In this document: positions 424 through 5,065 of the stretch, piece by piece
How the letters are laid out: every line of letters starts with the position of its first letter
How positions within the stretch are numbered: position 1 is the first letter of the stretch
Sequence record: OP999024.1
DNA length: 5,065 nucleotides
Strand: one strand, 5' to 3'
Notes under the pieces: model-generated
Databases searched by the model: none
Told to the model about the DNA's origin: nothing
The model's input: the letters and a program-made list of their open reading frames with translations, nothing else
Translations under genes and position numbers: made by a program

Positions 424-443
424 TCTTATTTTTCTATTTTTTG

Positions 444-460
444 CTTAAAAACCTTTCGTG
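444..460 (-). promoter_or_regulatory. Archaeal BRE + TATA promoter for the leaderless ORF starting at 423/420
   Basis: Minus strand reads CACGAAAGGTTTTTAAG. The TATA element is at -28..-21 from ATG 423, or -31..-24 from ATG 420. Confidence 0.7.
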
Positions 461-462
461 AC

Positions 463-477
463 CTAAAAGTTTAAAAA
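463..477 (+). promoter_or_regulatory. Candidate BRE + TATA of a divergent rightward promoter
   Basis: CTAAAAG-TTTAAAAA at 463-477, back to back with the leftward promoter. It predicts a transcription start near 500, about 14 nt before ATG 514. Confidence 0.45.
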
Positions 478-513
478 TGAGTATACATAAATTATTTATG
501 AGATGATGGTAAG

Positions 514-654
514 ATGAGTACATATAAGGAAGTACTTGAAAAGATGAAGAAGGAGCATAAGAGAGTACTTGATAACGAGGAAGAATCAGAGAAAGAAAAA
601 GAGGAAGAAGAGGAAGAAGATAAATTACTACAAAAGTTAGCAAATGGTCCATAA
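514..654 (+). CDS. Small highly charged protein, 46 aa (MSTYKEVLEKMKKEHKRVLDNEEESEKEKEEEEEEDKLLQKLANGP)
   Basis: Manual translation: ATG 514 to TAA 652-654. Purine-rich coding-like sense strand, upstream TATA and weak SD-like GATGGT (505-510), T-rich tract downstream. It explains the low-complexity sequence better than the antisense 78-aa ORF does. Confidence 0.6.
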   Translation: MSTYKEVLEKMKKEHKRVLDNEEESEKEKEEEEEEDKLLQKLANGP

Positions 655-655
655 A

Positions 656-682
656 TTGATTTGTTTTCAATTCTCCAATTTT
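656..682 (+). terminator. Possible archaeal T-rich terminator after the 46-aa ORF
   Basis: TTGATTTGTTTTCAATTCTCCAATTTT begins 2 nt after the stop. Oligo-T/pyrimidine tracts are typical of Sulfolobales terminators. Confidence 0.3.
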
Positions 683-1590: not shown

Positions 1591-1598
1591 ATTTAAAG
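1591..1598 (-). promoter_or_regulatory. TATA box for the leaderless ORF at 1567, overlapping the stop codon of the upstream gene
   Basis: Minus strand reads CTTTAAAT-TATCTTTCTTTTTATTTATCTAT-ATG. The TAA of the 151-aa gene (1595-1593) lies inside the box, and the following T-tract could also terminate the upstream transcript. Confidence 0.55.
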
Positions 1599-2048
1599 AT
1601 GCTGTACCTCTATTTCCACTGGTTTCTCTACTTTTCCATCTTTGCCATCTCCTTCTATTATCTTGTCTATTATTTCTACTACCTTTTGTTCTTGCTGTTC
1701 TTGCTTACTATCTTGCTTTCCGTCTCCCTCTATTATCTTATCTATTCTGTCTCTTACCATCCTTAGATCGGCCTTCAGCTTCAAGTCTTTTGATCCCTTA
1801 TATCTCTCTTCAAGCACATCGAGTATCTCCATCATTATAGTAATTAGATCAACATCTCTCACATTTGTAAACTCATAGAGTTTGCCAAAAACTTTTAAAT
1901 AATTCATTACAACATGCACATATTTATCTACTGGCCCTAGGTAGCAATGTTTTTTATTATTATGATTTATATAGTAATATTTTCTTTTTCCTGATTTTTT
2001 GATGTATAATGTCCCATTTTCGCCACAAATCGGACATTTGGTTGTCAT
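1593..2048 (-). CDS. Putative zinc-finger DNA-binding protein (CPICG...H...CYLGP) with helical middle and duplicated charged C-terminal peptide (151 aa)
   Basis: N-terminal CxxC, a basic/aromatic strand (KKSGKRKYYYINH) and HCYLGP supply four possible Zn ligands. From memory this motif recurs in crenarchaeal virus and plasmid proteins; not verified by search. Strong promoter upstream. Confidence 0.85.
   Translation of the reverse strand: MTTKCPICGENGTLYIKKSGKRKYYYINHNNKKHCYLGPVDKYVHVVMNYLKVFGKLYEFTNVRDVDLITIMMEILDVLEERYKGSKDLKLKADLRMVRDRIDKIIEGDGKQDSKQEQQEQKVVEIIDKIIEGDGKDGKVEKPVEIEVQHL
1641..1745 (-). repeat. Two 30-bp direct repeats (1641-1670 and 1716-1745), each encoding IDKIIEGDGK
   Basis: ATA GAT AAG ATA ATA GAG GGA GAC GGA AAG versus ATA GAC AAG ATA ATA GAA GGA GAT GGC AAA: 25/30 identical, period 75 nt. 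Confidence 0.95.
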
Positions 2049-2064
2049 ATGTTAGGATCTGTTT

Positions 2065-2085
2065 TTCTAGTATTTAAAACTTTCT
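2065..2085 (-). promoter_or_regulatory. BRE/TATA promoter of the zinc-finger gene; left copy of a 21-bp inverted repeat
   Basis: Minus strand reads AGAAAGTTTTAAATACTAGAA. TATA ends at -23 from ATG 2048. 19/21 identical to 2761-2781. Confidence 0.8.
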
Positions 2086-2138
2086 ATAATCACTGACGTT
2101 GTTAACCCGTCATTTTTTACGTCTTTCACTGCCCTTTG

Positions 2139-2158
2139 TTTCTACAATTTTATAGAAA
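2139..2158. promoter_or_regulatory. Dyad TTTCTA-N8-TAGAAA directly upstream of the recombinase promoter (operator or recombinase core-site candidate)
   Basis: Perfect 6-bp arms around an 8-bp spacer (CAATTTTA). Extends to 8/9 paired positions over 2136-2161. Confidence 0.5.
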
Positions 2159-2170
2159 GAACATTTTTAA
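2155..2170 (+). promoter_or_regulatory. BRE/TATA promoter for the leaderless recombinase gene
   Basis: GAAAGAACA-TTTTTAA, with the TATA element at -30..-24 from ATG 2194. Confidence 0.6.
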
Positions 2171-2193
2171 CCGCCTGATCTAAAAATGATAGT

Positions 2194-2745
2194 ATGGCAA
2201 TGGAAGAAGGGAAGGCAATATTCAAGTGGGACAAGGGAGTTGACTTTGACAAGATGAGAAAAACATTAGAAAAAGATTATAAGCAATTTTCACAGAATTC
2301 TACTGAAGATTTTGATAAAGAGATTTACGTTGCAATTTTACTTACACAACTAGTTAATGGTACACGAATAGGTGAAGCAGTTAAGGCCTTCTACCAATTT
2401 GTAGAGGTTAGTGGCAAAGAAAGGACAATCATCTTAAAGGCTGAAAAAGGCGGGAATGAGCGCAAAATCATCATCCCCAAAGTAATCACTTATAAAAAGT
2501 ACTATTCCATCATACTTACAAAAAGTGAAAGGAAAATGGTTTCAGTTTTAAAGATGTTCTGCAAAAGACATTATGGTGTAAACACGCATTCTTTCCGTTA
2601 TGCTTTTATAACAAAAGCAATAAAAGATGGGTTACCAGCCGAAGTAGTTGCAAAAATCACTGGCCATAGAAGCTTGCGCCATATTCTAACTTATGTCCAA
2701 ACGAAAGAGGCAGAAGATTACTTGTCACGAATCGCCAATTCATAA
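2194..2745 (+). CDS. Tyrosine recombinase (phage integrase family), catalytic domain only, 183 aa
   Basis: Complete catalytic set in canonical order: R58 (NGTRIGEA), K85 (AEKGG), H132-x-x-R135 (HSFR), H158 (ITGH), Y167 (ILTY). Only about 40 aa precede the first catalytic box, too few for a core-binding domain. Confidence 0.95.
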   Translation: MAMEEGKAIFKWDKGVDFDKMRKTLEKDYKQFSQNSTEDFDKEIYVAILLTQLVNGTRIGEAVKAFYQFVEVSGKERTIILKAEKGGNERKIIIPKVITYKKYYSIILTKSERKMVSVLKMFCKRHYGVNTHSFRYAFITKAIKDGLPAEVVAKITGHRSLRHILTYVQTKEAEDYLSRIANS

Positions 2746-2760
2746 TATCTTCCCCATTTA

Positions 2761-2781
2761 AGAAAGCTTTAAATATTAGAA
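2761..2781 (+). promoter_or_regulatory. BRE/TATA promoter of the RHH gene; right copy of the 21-bp inverted repeat
   Basis: AGAAAGCTTTAAATATTAGAA. TATA at -30..-23 from ATG 2798. Confidence 0.8.
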
Positions 2782-2797
2782 TTCAAAGTGGAAACGT

Positions 2798-3148
2798 ATG
2801 GAAGAGCAGAGGATTAAAGTTAGATTCCCATTAGACAAATACTTATACGAAGGTCTTCAAAAAGTGTCAAGCTTTCTTAAGAAAGATCAAGCACAAATAA
2901 TAAATGAGGCATTAGTTGAGTATCTGCAAAATCCAGTTGATAAATACTATCTTGAGCCTGGCAAAAAACATACAAAGATCGTTAAACTAGATCACAATCT
3001 TGTTGCTGCTGTGGAAGAGTTAGCAAACAAAAGGAATGTTACACCTTCTGTTATTATGAGAACAGCTTTAGCACTTTATATAAACAAGTGGTTGGAGGTA
3101 TTTTACAAAGAAGTATTAGAAAAACCTTCTCAGACTTCTTCACAATAA
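2798..3148 (+). CDS. Tandem ribbon-helix-helix (CopG/MetJ/Arc-like) DNA-binding protein, 116 aa
   Basis: Two RHH patterns: RIKVRFPLDKYLYEGLQKVSSFLKKDQAQIINEALVEYL and KHTKIVKLDHNLVAAVEELANKRNVTPSVIMRTALALYI. Each has an alternating beta strand, helix A, a turn and helix B with the II.eAl..Y signature. Confidence 0.85.
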   Translation: MEEQRIKVRFPLDKYLYEGLQKVSSFLKKDQAQIINEALVEYLQNPVDKYYLEPGKKHTKIVKLDHNLVAAVEELANKRNVTPSVIMRTALALYINKWLEVFYKEVLEKPSQTSSQ

Positions 3149-3157: not shown

Positions 3158-5065
3158 TTAACTTTTCGACATCCACAATGCAACAAAACCTACACCAATC
3201 GCTATTATTGCACTTGGAATAATAATATACGCTGGGAAGCCTAAGTCTAACAAACCAGGAACTATAAACACACCATACGCAATCCCACCCATTCCAACTA
3301 ATTTCAAATCATTCCTCAGCATCGCTGATAGGGCAAATATCAAGAAGATCACGTTAGCCAGAATAGGGCCAAAGAAAGCAAAAGGCCCAGGCAAACTATT
3401 TGAAATCGCATTGTACACCTGTTGAGCTAACTGCGCACTACCCAATTGAACCGGCGTTACATTAAAACTAGTAGACGCATTTGCCACAACTATGTTAACC
3501 TTAACTGGCGAAGTAACAACTGGCAAAGGAATTATTGAATTTACAGGAACATTCCTCGTCACCGCAGTACCATTACTAAATTCATAAGAAACACTGACAT
3601 TGAAATTAGCAGACTGATTATAGTTGTAGAGGTATAGAAAAGCGCCAGATGAATTAACAATAGGCATAGCTACAATTTGGCCAATCTTAGGCACTGACAC
3701 TGATGGGAAAGTAACAACGTTTATCCTTATTGTAGTTGTACCATTATACACTATCTGCATTTGGCCAGGGGAAATAGATTGTGTAGTAGTATTTGTAGAT
3801 GATGAAGGCGGTGGAGTAGTAGTAGTAGCACTGCTAGAACTAGCATTAGAACTTTGCAAACTAGCTAGTGTCGTAGTATTATACATTGTAACTGTAGTTG
3901 GAGAAATGTAGTATATGATAGGGTCTTGATAAAGGATAGAACCAGCTGGAATATAACTACTTAGTAGTTGAGGAGCTGGGATAGGGAAATTGGAAAACAT
4001 TGCAGCTGTTGCAGTAGAGAATGATAGAGTTAGCGAAGAGAACTTGTAAGAAATGTAGGGCGATAGTAGATTTGCTAGGACTGGGGTAGAGTTATAGTAT
4101 AATATAGCAGTAGCAACGTAACCCGGCGTAAACGGATAGGAAACGTAGTTCAAACCTTGTGAAAGAGTGTATTGGCCAACTTGAGCACTAGACTGTGATA
4201 CAGAGTAAGGCAAAGCATAGGGCGTGTTAAGATAGCTAGGTACAACGTAAGAAGATGCCCAGCTGTTTAAGAAGATGTAGGATGGAGAAACGAAAGTAAT
4301 AGATGTTGGGCCGCTGGATGCTGCGAAATAAGATACGTAGTATAAATTATATATATCTCCTCTTATTGCTACATATGCAATTTGTGACCAAGAAAATGGC
4401 GTGTTAATGTTTATTGCTGTATACGTACCGTTTATTCCAACTTCCGAAACTGTTACATTACCAGCACTATTTTCTGTAAGGATTACAGTGAAAGTAAATG
4501 GATAGTCTGGATTTGGCTGCGGTAGTGAAGAGTCTAATCCAGTGTAGCCAGTAGATGGACCATGATACAATATATAATTACCATAAAAATCAATAGCAAG
4601 TACATAAAAACCAGCAACATTACTATCAGCGGTTTGGTTTCCTACATTTGGACTAAGAAGATCAATGCCTGGATCATAATTATGGACTGGAAATGATACT
4701 ACATGTATCGTTACATTAAGCGTTGTAGTTGAAGGCGTAAAATACCACGCTACATATTGGCTATGTAGTGAAGAACCAGTCGAGTTTACTACTAATAAGT
4801 TCCCTTGGTAATACGGTTTAGGCGATGAACCCCAATCGGTTGATTCTACTTCTGGTAAAAACGCAAATAGTTTATTGCCCAGTATCATAGGCATCTGTTC
4901 TAATGATACACCAATCGTTCCAGTTCCTAGCGAAACATAATACCACACCGGCAAGACCAGTCCAAATGTTGGCAATCCAGACTGTACTATCTGCGTACTA
5001 AATGTGAAGGTTGACGTTGAAGATATAACTATTTTGTTAAAAGTAGCATTATATACACTTACTTG
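3158..5065 (-). CDS. Large membrane-anchored surface/virion glycoprotein (adhesin or tail-spike-like), 5'-truncated; at least 635 aa in the window
   Basis: The frame stays open for 30 codons upstream of the tracked TTG at 4975 (QVSVYNATFNKIVISSTSTFTFSTQIVQSG), so the true start is outside the window. The tracked 605 aa have 16 N-x-S/T sequons, no Cys, very few charged residues, beta-rich segments, an S/T/P linker (SSNASSSSATTTTPPPSSSTNTTT) and three C-terminal hydrophobic helices. Confidence 0.9.
   Translation of the reverse strand, partial: QVSVYNATFNKIVISSTSTFTFSTQIVQSGLPTFGLVLPVWYYVSLGTGTIGVSLEQMPMILGNKLFAFLPEVESTDWGSSPKPYYQGNLLVVNSTGSSLHSQYVAWYFTPSTTTLNVTIHVVSFPVHNYDPGIDLLSPNVGNQTADSNVAGFYVLAIDFYGNYILYHGPSTGYTGLDSSLPQPNPDYPFTFTVILTENSAGNVTVSEVGINGTYTAININTPFSWSQIAYVAIRGDIYNLYYVSYFAASSGPTSITFVSPSYIFLNSWASSYVVPSYLNTPYALPYSVSQSSAQVGQYTLSQGLNYVSYPFTPGYVATAILYYNSTPVLANLLSPYISYKFSSLTLSFSTATAAMFSNFPIPAPQLLSSYIPAGSILYQDPIIYYISPTTVTMYNTTTLASLQSSNASSSSATTTTPPPSSSTNTTTQSISPGQMQIVYNGTTTIRINVVTFPSVSVPKIGQIVAMPIVNSSGAFLYLYNYNQSANFNVSVSYEFSNGTAVTRNVPVNSIIPLPVVTSPVKVNIVVANASTSFNVTPVQLGSAQLAQQVYNAISNSLPGPFAFFGPILANVIFLIFALSAMLRNDLKLVGMGGIAYGVFIVPGLLDLGFPAYIIIPSAIIAIGVGFVALWMSKS

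Follow-up and report, generated by a model that had tools for sequence, protein, structure and literature searches.

Outward-facing promoters around a recombinase gene of the Sulfolobus virus STSV3: very probably two ordinary copies of a strong viral BRE/TATA core

In archaeal promoters, the canonical distance from the TATA box to the transcription start is about 26–27 nt. Three elements make up the archaeal core promoter: a 6-bp purine-rich transcription factor B recognition element (BRE), an 8-bp TATA box (TTTAWATR), and, from −12 to −1, a proximal element rich in A and T; Sulfolobus transcripts are mostly leaderless, the transcription start being the start codon itself (bioRxiv 10.1101/2025.11.20.689296). 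Many archaeal viruses, among them STSV1 and STSV2, have a near-identical strong BRE/TATA core at their early genes, and the same core occurs at highly expressed host genes, e.g., cren7 and slaA (2024 study, PMC11065993); the T5 promoter of the spindle-shaped virus SSV10 contains AGAAAGATTTATATA, almost the same 15-mer as the one described below (PMC6080066). Here, we describe two such promoters from STSV3, a Sulfolobus spindle-shaped virus, in a stretch of 5,065 nt of contig OP999024.1 (referred to as the window; positions are those of this stretch). They lie on either side of a tyrosine recombinase gene annotated as "putative integrase" (2194–2745, plus strand; 183 aa) and face outward, one toward the gene of a zinc-finger protein taken from the open reading frame (ORF) list (1593–2048, minus strand; 151 aa; ortholog of STSV1 ORF57 and STSV2_55), the other toward the gene of a ribbon-helix-helix (RHH) protein (2798–3148, plus strand; 116 aa; ortholog of STSV1 ORF55 and STSV2_53). 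A first-pass annotation of this DNA had regarded them as twins, serving either as duplicated promoter-operators that co-regulate the two flanking genes or as recombination sites by which the recombinase inverts its own cassette. With high confidence, we regard both as ordinary instances of the strong BRE/TATA core of this virus that drive outward-facing leaderless genes, the repeat and the equal spacing being by-products.

This type of promoter, and its presence at the STSV1 and STSV2 orthologs of the two flanking genes, is already on record. The supplement of the 2024 study lists STSV1 ORF55, STSV1 ORF57, STSV2_53, and STSV2_55 in a class of genes with a BRE/TATA highly like that of the early promoter, set apart from it, e.g., by a likely start near the start codon; the RHH gene is entered in its Supplementary Data as "rhh, CopG family, putative transcriptional regulator" (PMC11065993). 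Like the early promoters of archaeal viruses and the T5/T6 promoters of SSV, the STSV3 promoters have a purine-rich BRE just before a TTTAWATR TATA box and occur as near-identical copies within one genome. Nothing essential distinguishes them from the early-promoter consensus of archaeal viruses; the STSV3 pair is predicted to drive leaderless genes, with a gap of 16 nt. The feature is known in kind, its counterparts in STSV1 and STSV2 having already been annotated or listed.

DNA-inversion systems resemble the locus in layout. In Hin/hix of the Salmonella H segment, a serine recombinase gene lies between inverted repeats of ~26 bp, and both orientations occur in nature; in the fim system of Escherichia coli, FimB and FimE, tyrosine recombinases of ~200 aa, act on the 9-bp inverted repeats of fimS. 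The STSV3 locus shares with the former a recombinase gene between short inverted repeats and outward-reading promoters in the region, and with the latter a tyrosine recombinase of small size that lacks a large arm-binding domain at its N-terminus, and short inverted repeats nearby. Hin is, however, a serine recombinase, whereas the STSV3 enzyme is a tyrosine recombinase; the hix sites are dyad-symmetric sites for recombinase binding, whereas the STSV3 arms are asymmetric promoters; and the Hin promoter lies inside the segment, where inversion alters expression, whereas in STSV3 the repeats are the promoters and inversion would be silent. In the fim system, the recombinase genes lie outside the invertible element and a single internal promoter changes direction, whereas in STSV3 the recombinase gene lies between the repeats and the promoters are the repeats themselves. 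Finally, the two natural orientations of the Hin segment and the demonstrated phase variation of fim contrast with an STSV3 locus that was found in one orientation, without variation among 16 sequences (0/16 inverted). These comprise STSV1, STSV2, STSV3, and STSV4; the viral contig L011 from a Metallosphaera metagenome-assembled genome (MAG), with a recombinase 85% identical; and eleven metagenomic or MAG contigs whose recombinases fall in the same 90% cluster (L017–L027).

The arms of the repeat are AGAAAGTTTTAAATACTAGAA (2085–2065, minus strand) and AGAAAGCTTTAAATATTAGAA (2761–2781, plus strand). They are identical at 19 of 21 positions and, when taken with their flanks as 26 nt (2065–2090 and 2756–2781), at 22 of 26 (85%), forming the top-ranked inverted repeat of the window. 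On both sides the gap from the 21-mer to the start codon is exactly 16 nt (CAT at 2046–2048 for the zinc-finger gene; ATG at 2798–2800 for the RHH gene), and the leaders end in AACAT-ATG and AACGT-ATG, respectively; over their full 16 nt, the leaders match at 6 positions, about as expected by chance. The best other site in the window reaches at most 15/21 of the 21-mer motif. The arm matches, the spacing, and the leader ends had been given in the first-pass annotation, along with the statement that the other promoters of the window do not share the match; the arm matches were recomputed, the spacing and leader ends were read again from the sequence, and each was found correct, as was the statement on the other promoters within the 5 kb of the window. 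Among 60 shuffled windows (first-order Markov), an inverted pair of at least 19/21 was present in 5, as was one of at least 22/26. The strength of the match alone is, for a bare inverted repeat, unremarkable in AT-rich DNA. What is non-random is that both arms are equally far from their start codons, and promoter function accounts for this.

By sequence, both arms fit the archaeal core-promoter layout of BRE and TATA box exactly. The zinc-finger core promoter (left arm; 2065–2085, minus strand; plus-strand coordinates are given for its parts) has the BRE AGAAAG at 2080–2085, a spacer T at 2079, the TATA box TTTAAATA at 2071–2078, and a tail, CTAGAA, at 2065–2070. In the RHH core promoter (right arm; 2761–2781, plus strand), the BRE AGAAAG at 2761–2766 is followed by a spacer C at 2767, the TATA box TTTAAATA at 2768–2775, and the tail TTAGAA at 2776–2781. 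AGAAAG is purine at 6/6 positions, and TTTAAATA fits TTTAWATR in both arms. The 16-nt leader stretches of the zinc-finger gene (2049–2064, minus strand) and the RHH gene (2782–2797, plus strand) would contain the proximal promoter element and a predicted initiator; no Shine-Dalgarno sequence was found in the 16-nt gaps of the two promoters. Measured from the center of the TATA box, the A of the ATG is 26.5 nt away in either promoter (2074.5 to 2048; 2771.5 to 2798), a geometry from which transcription would start at or next to the A of each ATG and yield leaderless mRNAs. The spacing of 16 nt would be equal because the geometry of leaderless genes fixes the distance from TATA box to start, and the pair looks like an inverted repeat because two promoter-bearing genes point away from each other. 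In the STSV1 record, TATA_box features are present at the orthologous sites of both arms (3427–3432; 4121–4126). The core, that of the left arm included, is kept nearly invariant in 15 STSV-clade sequences (STSV1–4 and L017–L027; the left arm of L022 is missing at the contig end), with one base of the TATA box changed in the right arm of L023. The earlier reading of both arms as BRE/TATA promoters is thus borne out by the sequence together with the STSV1 annotation.

The core is not peculiar to these two genes. Its motif was scanned in the complete genomes of STSV1 (L001) and STSV2 (L002) and in two other large contigs of STSV3; in all, ~51 kb of the STSV3 sequence were covered, without contig OP999022 (published genome size 72,061 bp or 77,497 bp, both in the same paper). 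Perfect 15/15 copies of AGAAAGNTTTAAATA are present in STSV1 upstream of ORF2, ORF4, ORF55 (RHH), and ORF57 (zinc finger); in STSV2 upstream of STSV2_04, STSV2_06, STSV2_53, and STSV2_55, together with one unannotated copy; and at four more sites on the STSV3 contig OP999021 (L016; 4234, 4994, 7566, 8276). Matches of 13–14/15 occur at many more promoters of the scanned genomes, and the same BRE, AGAAAG, is present at many other STSV promoters. Promoter classes can be told apart by their leaders, one with a leader of 26–30 nt that contains GGTGA (Shine-Dalgarno), another leaderless with a gap of 15–16 nt. At the opposite end of the STSV genomes, paralogue families with several copies combine the same core with the 26–30-nt Shine-Dalgarno leader, and a gap of exactly 16 nt was found at seven promoter-like sites before annotated genes, including the unrelated STSV1 ORF64, STSV1 ORF65, and STSV2_64. 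Within STSV3, the zinc-finger and RHH promoters match each other at 19/21, but at only 21/31 once extended by ten bases; the zinc-finger promoter and the unrelated promoter at 4994 of OP999021 match at 18/21 and 25/31, and six further promoter-like sites agree with the RHH promoter at 17/21. The first 15–16 nt of the arms are, to judge from these matches, the general strong-promoter consensus of STSV-type viruses. A special twin relationship of the two arms does not survive this comparison, as the core recurs at unrelated genes and the spacing is standard for leaderless genes. It had been foreseen that occurrence of the 21-mer in many unrelated promoters would reduce it to such a consensus; this was found for the 15-nt core and not for the full 21-mer.

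Each arm would accordingly be described as an independent instance of the standard strong core promoter of STSV-type viruses and their Sulfolobales hosts. The zinc-finger mRNA would be transcribed leftward and the RHH mRNA rightward, both leaderless, and the recombinase gene would have its own weaker promoter and no functional tie to the repeat. Three points weigh against this reading. The leaderless starts of the STSV3 genes are inferred from geometry; the tails of the two arms match at 5/6 in STSV3 and at 5–6/6 in STSV2, L018, and L025, slightly above the core consensus; and rare rearrangements are invisible in consensus assemblies.

The 6-nt post-TATA tail, CTAGAA on the left and TTAGAA on the right, is the only part of the arms that goes beyond the consensus. 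As a shared operator of approximate form YTAG[A/T]A, it would be bound in both promoters by one regulator, the RHH or the zinc-finger protein, and the flanking genes would form a small regulon with joint repression or timing. The tail matches just given (5/6 in STSV4 as well) are in its favor, as are the TAG kept in most right-arm tails (GTAGTA, GTAGAA, CTAGAA, TTAGAA), the CTAGTA at the STSV1 ORF62 promoter, and the fact that the product of the right-hand gene is an RHH regulator. However, tail identity of at least 5/6 is already reached by 8–9% of all promoter pairs in the scanned STSV genomes, and the tails drift independently: they match at 2/6 in STSV1 (CCAGAA/GTATTA), at 3/6 in L017 and L019 (CCAGAA/GTAGTA), and at 4/6 in L021 (CCAGAA/CTATAA). 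Among the relatives, left tails are CTAGAA, CCAGAA, TTAGAA, or CAAGAA, and right tails TTAGAA, CTAGAA, GTAGAA, GTAGTA, GTATTA, or CTATAA; identity between whole arms ranges from 16/21 (STSV1) to 20/21 (L018). The TAGAA tail is common to both arms in STSV2, STSV3, STSV4, L018, and L025, degraded in STSV1, L017, L019, and L021, and absent in L011, which keeps the gene trio, yet has an unrelated RHH promoter (~8/21, counted by hand). Moreover, the tail has none of the dyad or tandem symmetry typical of RHH operators, and the leaders agree at just the 6 of 16 positions noted above. A shared operator is, on balance, unlikely. The match through TAGAA noted in the first-pass annotation stands for STSV3 and is kept neither in STSV1 nor in several metagenomic variants; co-regulation, which it had rightly preferred to inversion, is supported in the sense of a shared promoter class and not beyond that.

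In the other alternative, the 21-bp arms are sites for the enclosed tyrosine recombinase, and the ~0.7-kb segment between them (2086–2760) flips. This has on its side a catalytically complete recombinase between inverted repeats (invariant R-H-R-H-Y; Pfam match above threshold), the superficial likeness to the Hin/hix layout with the recombinase gene inside the segment, and the fact that several metagenomic contigs stop near the left arm. The comparison of orientation among relatives that the first-pass annotation had proposed was carried out and speaks against it, as the order is zinc finger (minus), recombinase (plus), and RHH (plus) in all sequences. Where the contigs reach the arms, the left arm is followed by a leader of the zinc-finger type (AAACAGANCCTAA...), the right arm by one of the RHH type (...AAACGTATGGCA); L022 starts just inside the left arm, so that its left junction lies outside the contig. 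The base between BRE and TATA box can serve as a marker, because exchange inside the TATA box would carry it along with the cassette. In the STSV clade, every left arm that is present has T at this base; the right arms have C, A, or T. Nor do the arms contain two inverted half-sites around an asymmetric spacer: when an arm is parsed as AGAAAGC / TTTAAA / TATTAGAA, its two outer parts do not complement each other and symmetry is confined to the TATA box, and the only long invariant block common to the arms, TTTAAATA, is nearly palindromic in a way for which TATA function accounts. A flanking repeat is lacking in L011, in spite of its closely related recombinase (its zinc-finger promoter is still recognizable as AAAAAGATTAATATACTAGTA with a 16-nt gap), and at the distant family members L012 and L014 from Thermofilaceae MAGs. 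Finally, exchange within near-identical promoters would leave essentially the same promoter at both genes, so that the regulatory switch once suggested would be a switch without obvious output. A self-inverting cassette is thus highly improbable.

The contig ends near the left arm were considered as a sign of inversion and rejected, since 12–15 nt of the usual zinc-finger leader remain in these contigs, which also extend across the right arm. The breaks of five independent metagenomic contigs, obtained from different samples and with different assemblers, lie at or near the zinc-finger start codon or the left promoter, and none lies at the right promoter; L017, L023, L024, and L027 start 141–144 nt upstream of the recombinase gene, at the zinc-finger start codon and 12–15 nt beyond the left arm, and L022 107 nt upstream. 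The breaks probably reflect heterogeneity of strains or paralogues in the zinc-finger region and not inversion; the start codon is the point from which the paralogous copies of STSV2 and L018 diverge. The predicted inverted left junction, TCTGTTTTTCT-N(24–28)-GAAGATAYTAYGAAT, was found neither among JGI metagenome contigs nor in IMG/VR; for the metagenome contigs this is uninformative, since the control with the normal junction was empty there as well. That the recombinase occasionally crosses over at the promoter cores, flipping the 0.7-kb cassette too rarely for consensus assemblies, has the evidence against it and is given very little credence here; if true, such rare flipping would make the locus a self-inverting module of an archaeal virus.

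As two ordinary promoters, the pair in STSV3 confirms the strong BRE/TATA core and the leaderless gene layout that are on record for Sulfolobales and for the viruses of this group, and matters little in itself. It bears on genome scans in that two outward-facing consensus promoters in AT-rich archaeal viruses mimic an inverted repeat of 15–20 bp with identical spacing to the start codons; therefore, an inversion switch cannot be read from the presence of such promoters on either side of a recombinase gene. Of possibly greater use are two by-products, namely the compact and conserved trio of zinc-finger, mini-recombinase, and RHH genes, and a family of tyrosine recombinases of 165–183 aa.

The STSV3 recombinase matches Pfam Phage_integrase (PF00589) over residues 26–172 (E = 4.8e-09; 36.7 bits against a cut-off of 27.1), and R58, H132, R135, H158, and Y167 are invariant across 14 recombinase homologs; it looks catalytically competent on these residues. 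Among solved structures, archaeal XerA (4a8e) comes closest, with a weak match (E = 0.034). With XerA and viral tyrosine recombinases it shares the catalytic R-H-R-H-Y set and PF00589; unlike XerA, it is a protein of 183 aa that comprises the catalytic domain and an N-terminus of ~45 residues with an invariant W-D-x-G, and whereas Cre, XerC/D, and XerA have a separate N-terminal core-binding domain, its profile match spans 26–172 of 183 residues. The family of these mini tyrosine recombinases, all 165–183 aa long with all catalytic residues and the invariant N-terminal W-D-x-G motif, has members in STSV-like viruses and in Thermofilaceae MAG contigs (L012, L014). The Thermofilaceae homologs adjoin MoxR-ATPase and VWA genes, an arrangement reminiscent of bicaudaviruses. 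A search for related loci with the recombinase gave no relative among genome contigs, and hence no provirus from which attachment sites could be defined; among viral contigs it gave STSV1 and STSV2 alone. STSV3 and STSV4 have an ATG start codon where most relatives have GTG; the STSV1 record calls a shorter protein of 163 aa (start at 3607 versus 3547), which is probably an under-call.

A putative weaker promoter of the recombinase gene itself lies at 2154–2193 (plus strand), with a BRE-like AGAAAG (2154–2159) and a degenerate TATA box, TTTTTAA (2164–2170), whose center is 26.5–27 nt before the ATG at 2194. The TATA annotation upstream of the integrase gene in STSV1 (3519–3525) should correspond to it, by position only. 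An 8-bp inverted repeat, CATTTTTA (2162–2169) and TAAAAATG (2181–2188), overlaps this promoter and brackets its TATA box and start region, and a second hairpin is formed by TGACG (2094–2098) and CGTCA (2108–2112). With these two small predicted hairpins, the conserved 108-bp upstream region (2086–2193) has a fold that was beaten by 1 of 200 shuffles (z = −3.2); it is a candidate operator or recombinase site, and would be a better place than the promoters for a real site. No tRNA-like sequence was found in the window (Rfam at a permissive threshold, ARAGORN), and hence no sign of a tRNA-derived attachment site. The annotated ORF5 (36 aa; 2142–2252, minus strand) overlaps the recombinase promoter and the 5′ end of the gene and is suspected to be spurious.

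The zinc-finger protein carries at its N-terminus a C-x2-C...H-x5-C finger, in which the aligned sequences do not differ at C4, C7, H28, or C34, and it has an acidic repeat tail that is variable; its match to Pfam PSV_ORF131-like is weak (E = 0.0021) and below the curated cut-off. A 42-nt direct repeat within the gene (1642–1683 and 1717–1758; 81% identity, 75 nt apart) encodes a repeated ...IIEGDGK... peptide of the C-terminal tail. This tail varies in length among relatives and is mostly missing in STSV1 and L011. In STSV2 (3421–3790) and in the MAG contig L018 (gap 1744–2222), the 5′ end of the zinc-finger gene, its promoter, and ~95 nt upstream of the recombinase gene are duplicated in tandem; the duplication, absent from STSV1, STSV3, and STSV4, yields an unannotated ORF of 50 aa with the zinc finger only (MPFKCPVCGEFGTLY...; STSV2 3600–3752, minus strand) and its own perfect copy of the promoter. 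In the RHH protein, residues 62–96 match Pfam RHH_1 (E = 9.2e-07), and residues 9–49 match an RH3 domain below the cut-off (E = 4.7e-04), with a weak match to the SSV-RH ORF E73 (4aai). It appears to hold two RHH-like modules in one chain and could, as a pseudo-dimer, form a DNA-binding unit. Its identification as a homolog of aCcr1 with the known box motif was considered and rejected, the STSV2 RHH proteins falling outside the aCcr1 clade (PMC9976892).

Close relatives of this DNA are STSV4 (97%), STSV1 (84%), and STSV2 (83%), and no plasmid match was found. A scan of the window for sigma-70 promoters and intrinsic terminators, which is unsuited to an archaeal virus, gave counts equal to those of shuffles. 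On its minus strand, the window also includes the 3′ portion of a gene for a structural protein, which is very large. At 514–654 (plus strand), an ORF encodes a highly acidic protein of 46 aa (MSTYKEVLEKMKKEHKRVLDNEEESEKEKEEEEEEDK...) that is kept in L011 as an ORF of 47 aa (3528–3671); in GenBank, the overlapping ORF1 of 78 aa (434–670, minus strand) is annotated instead, which looks spurious.

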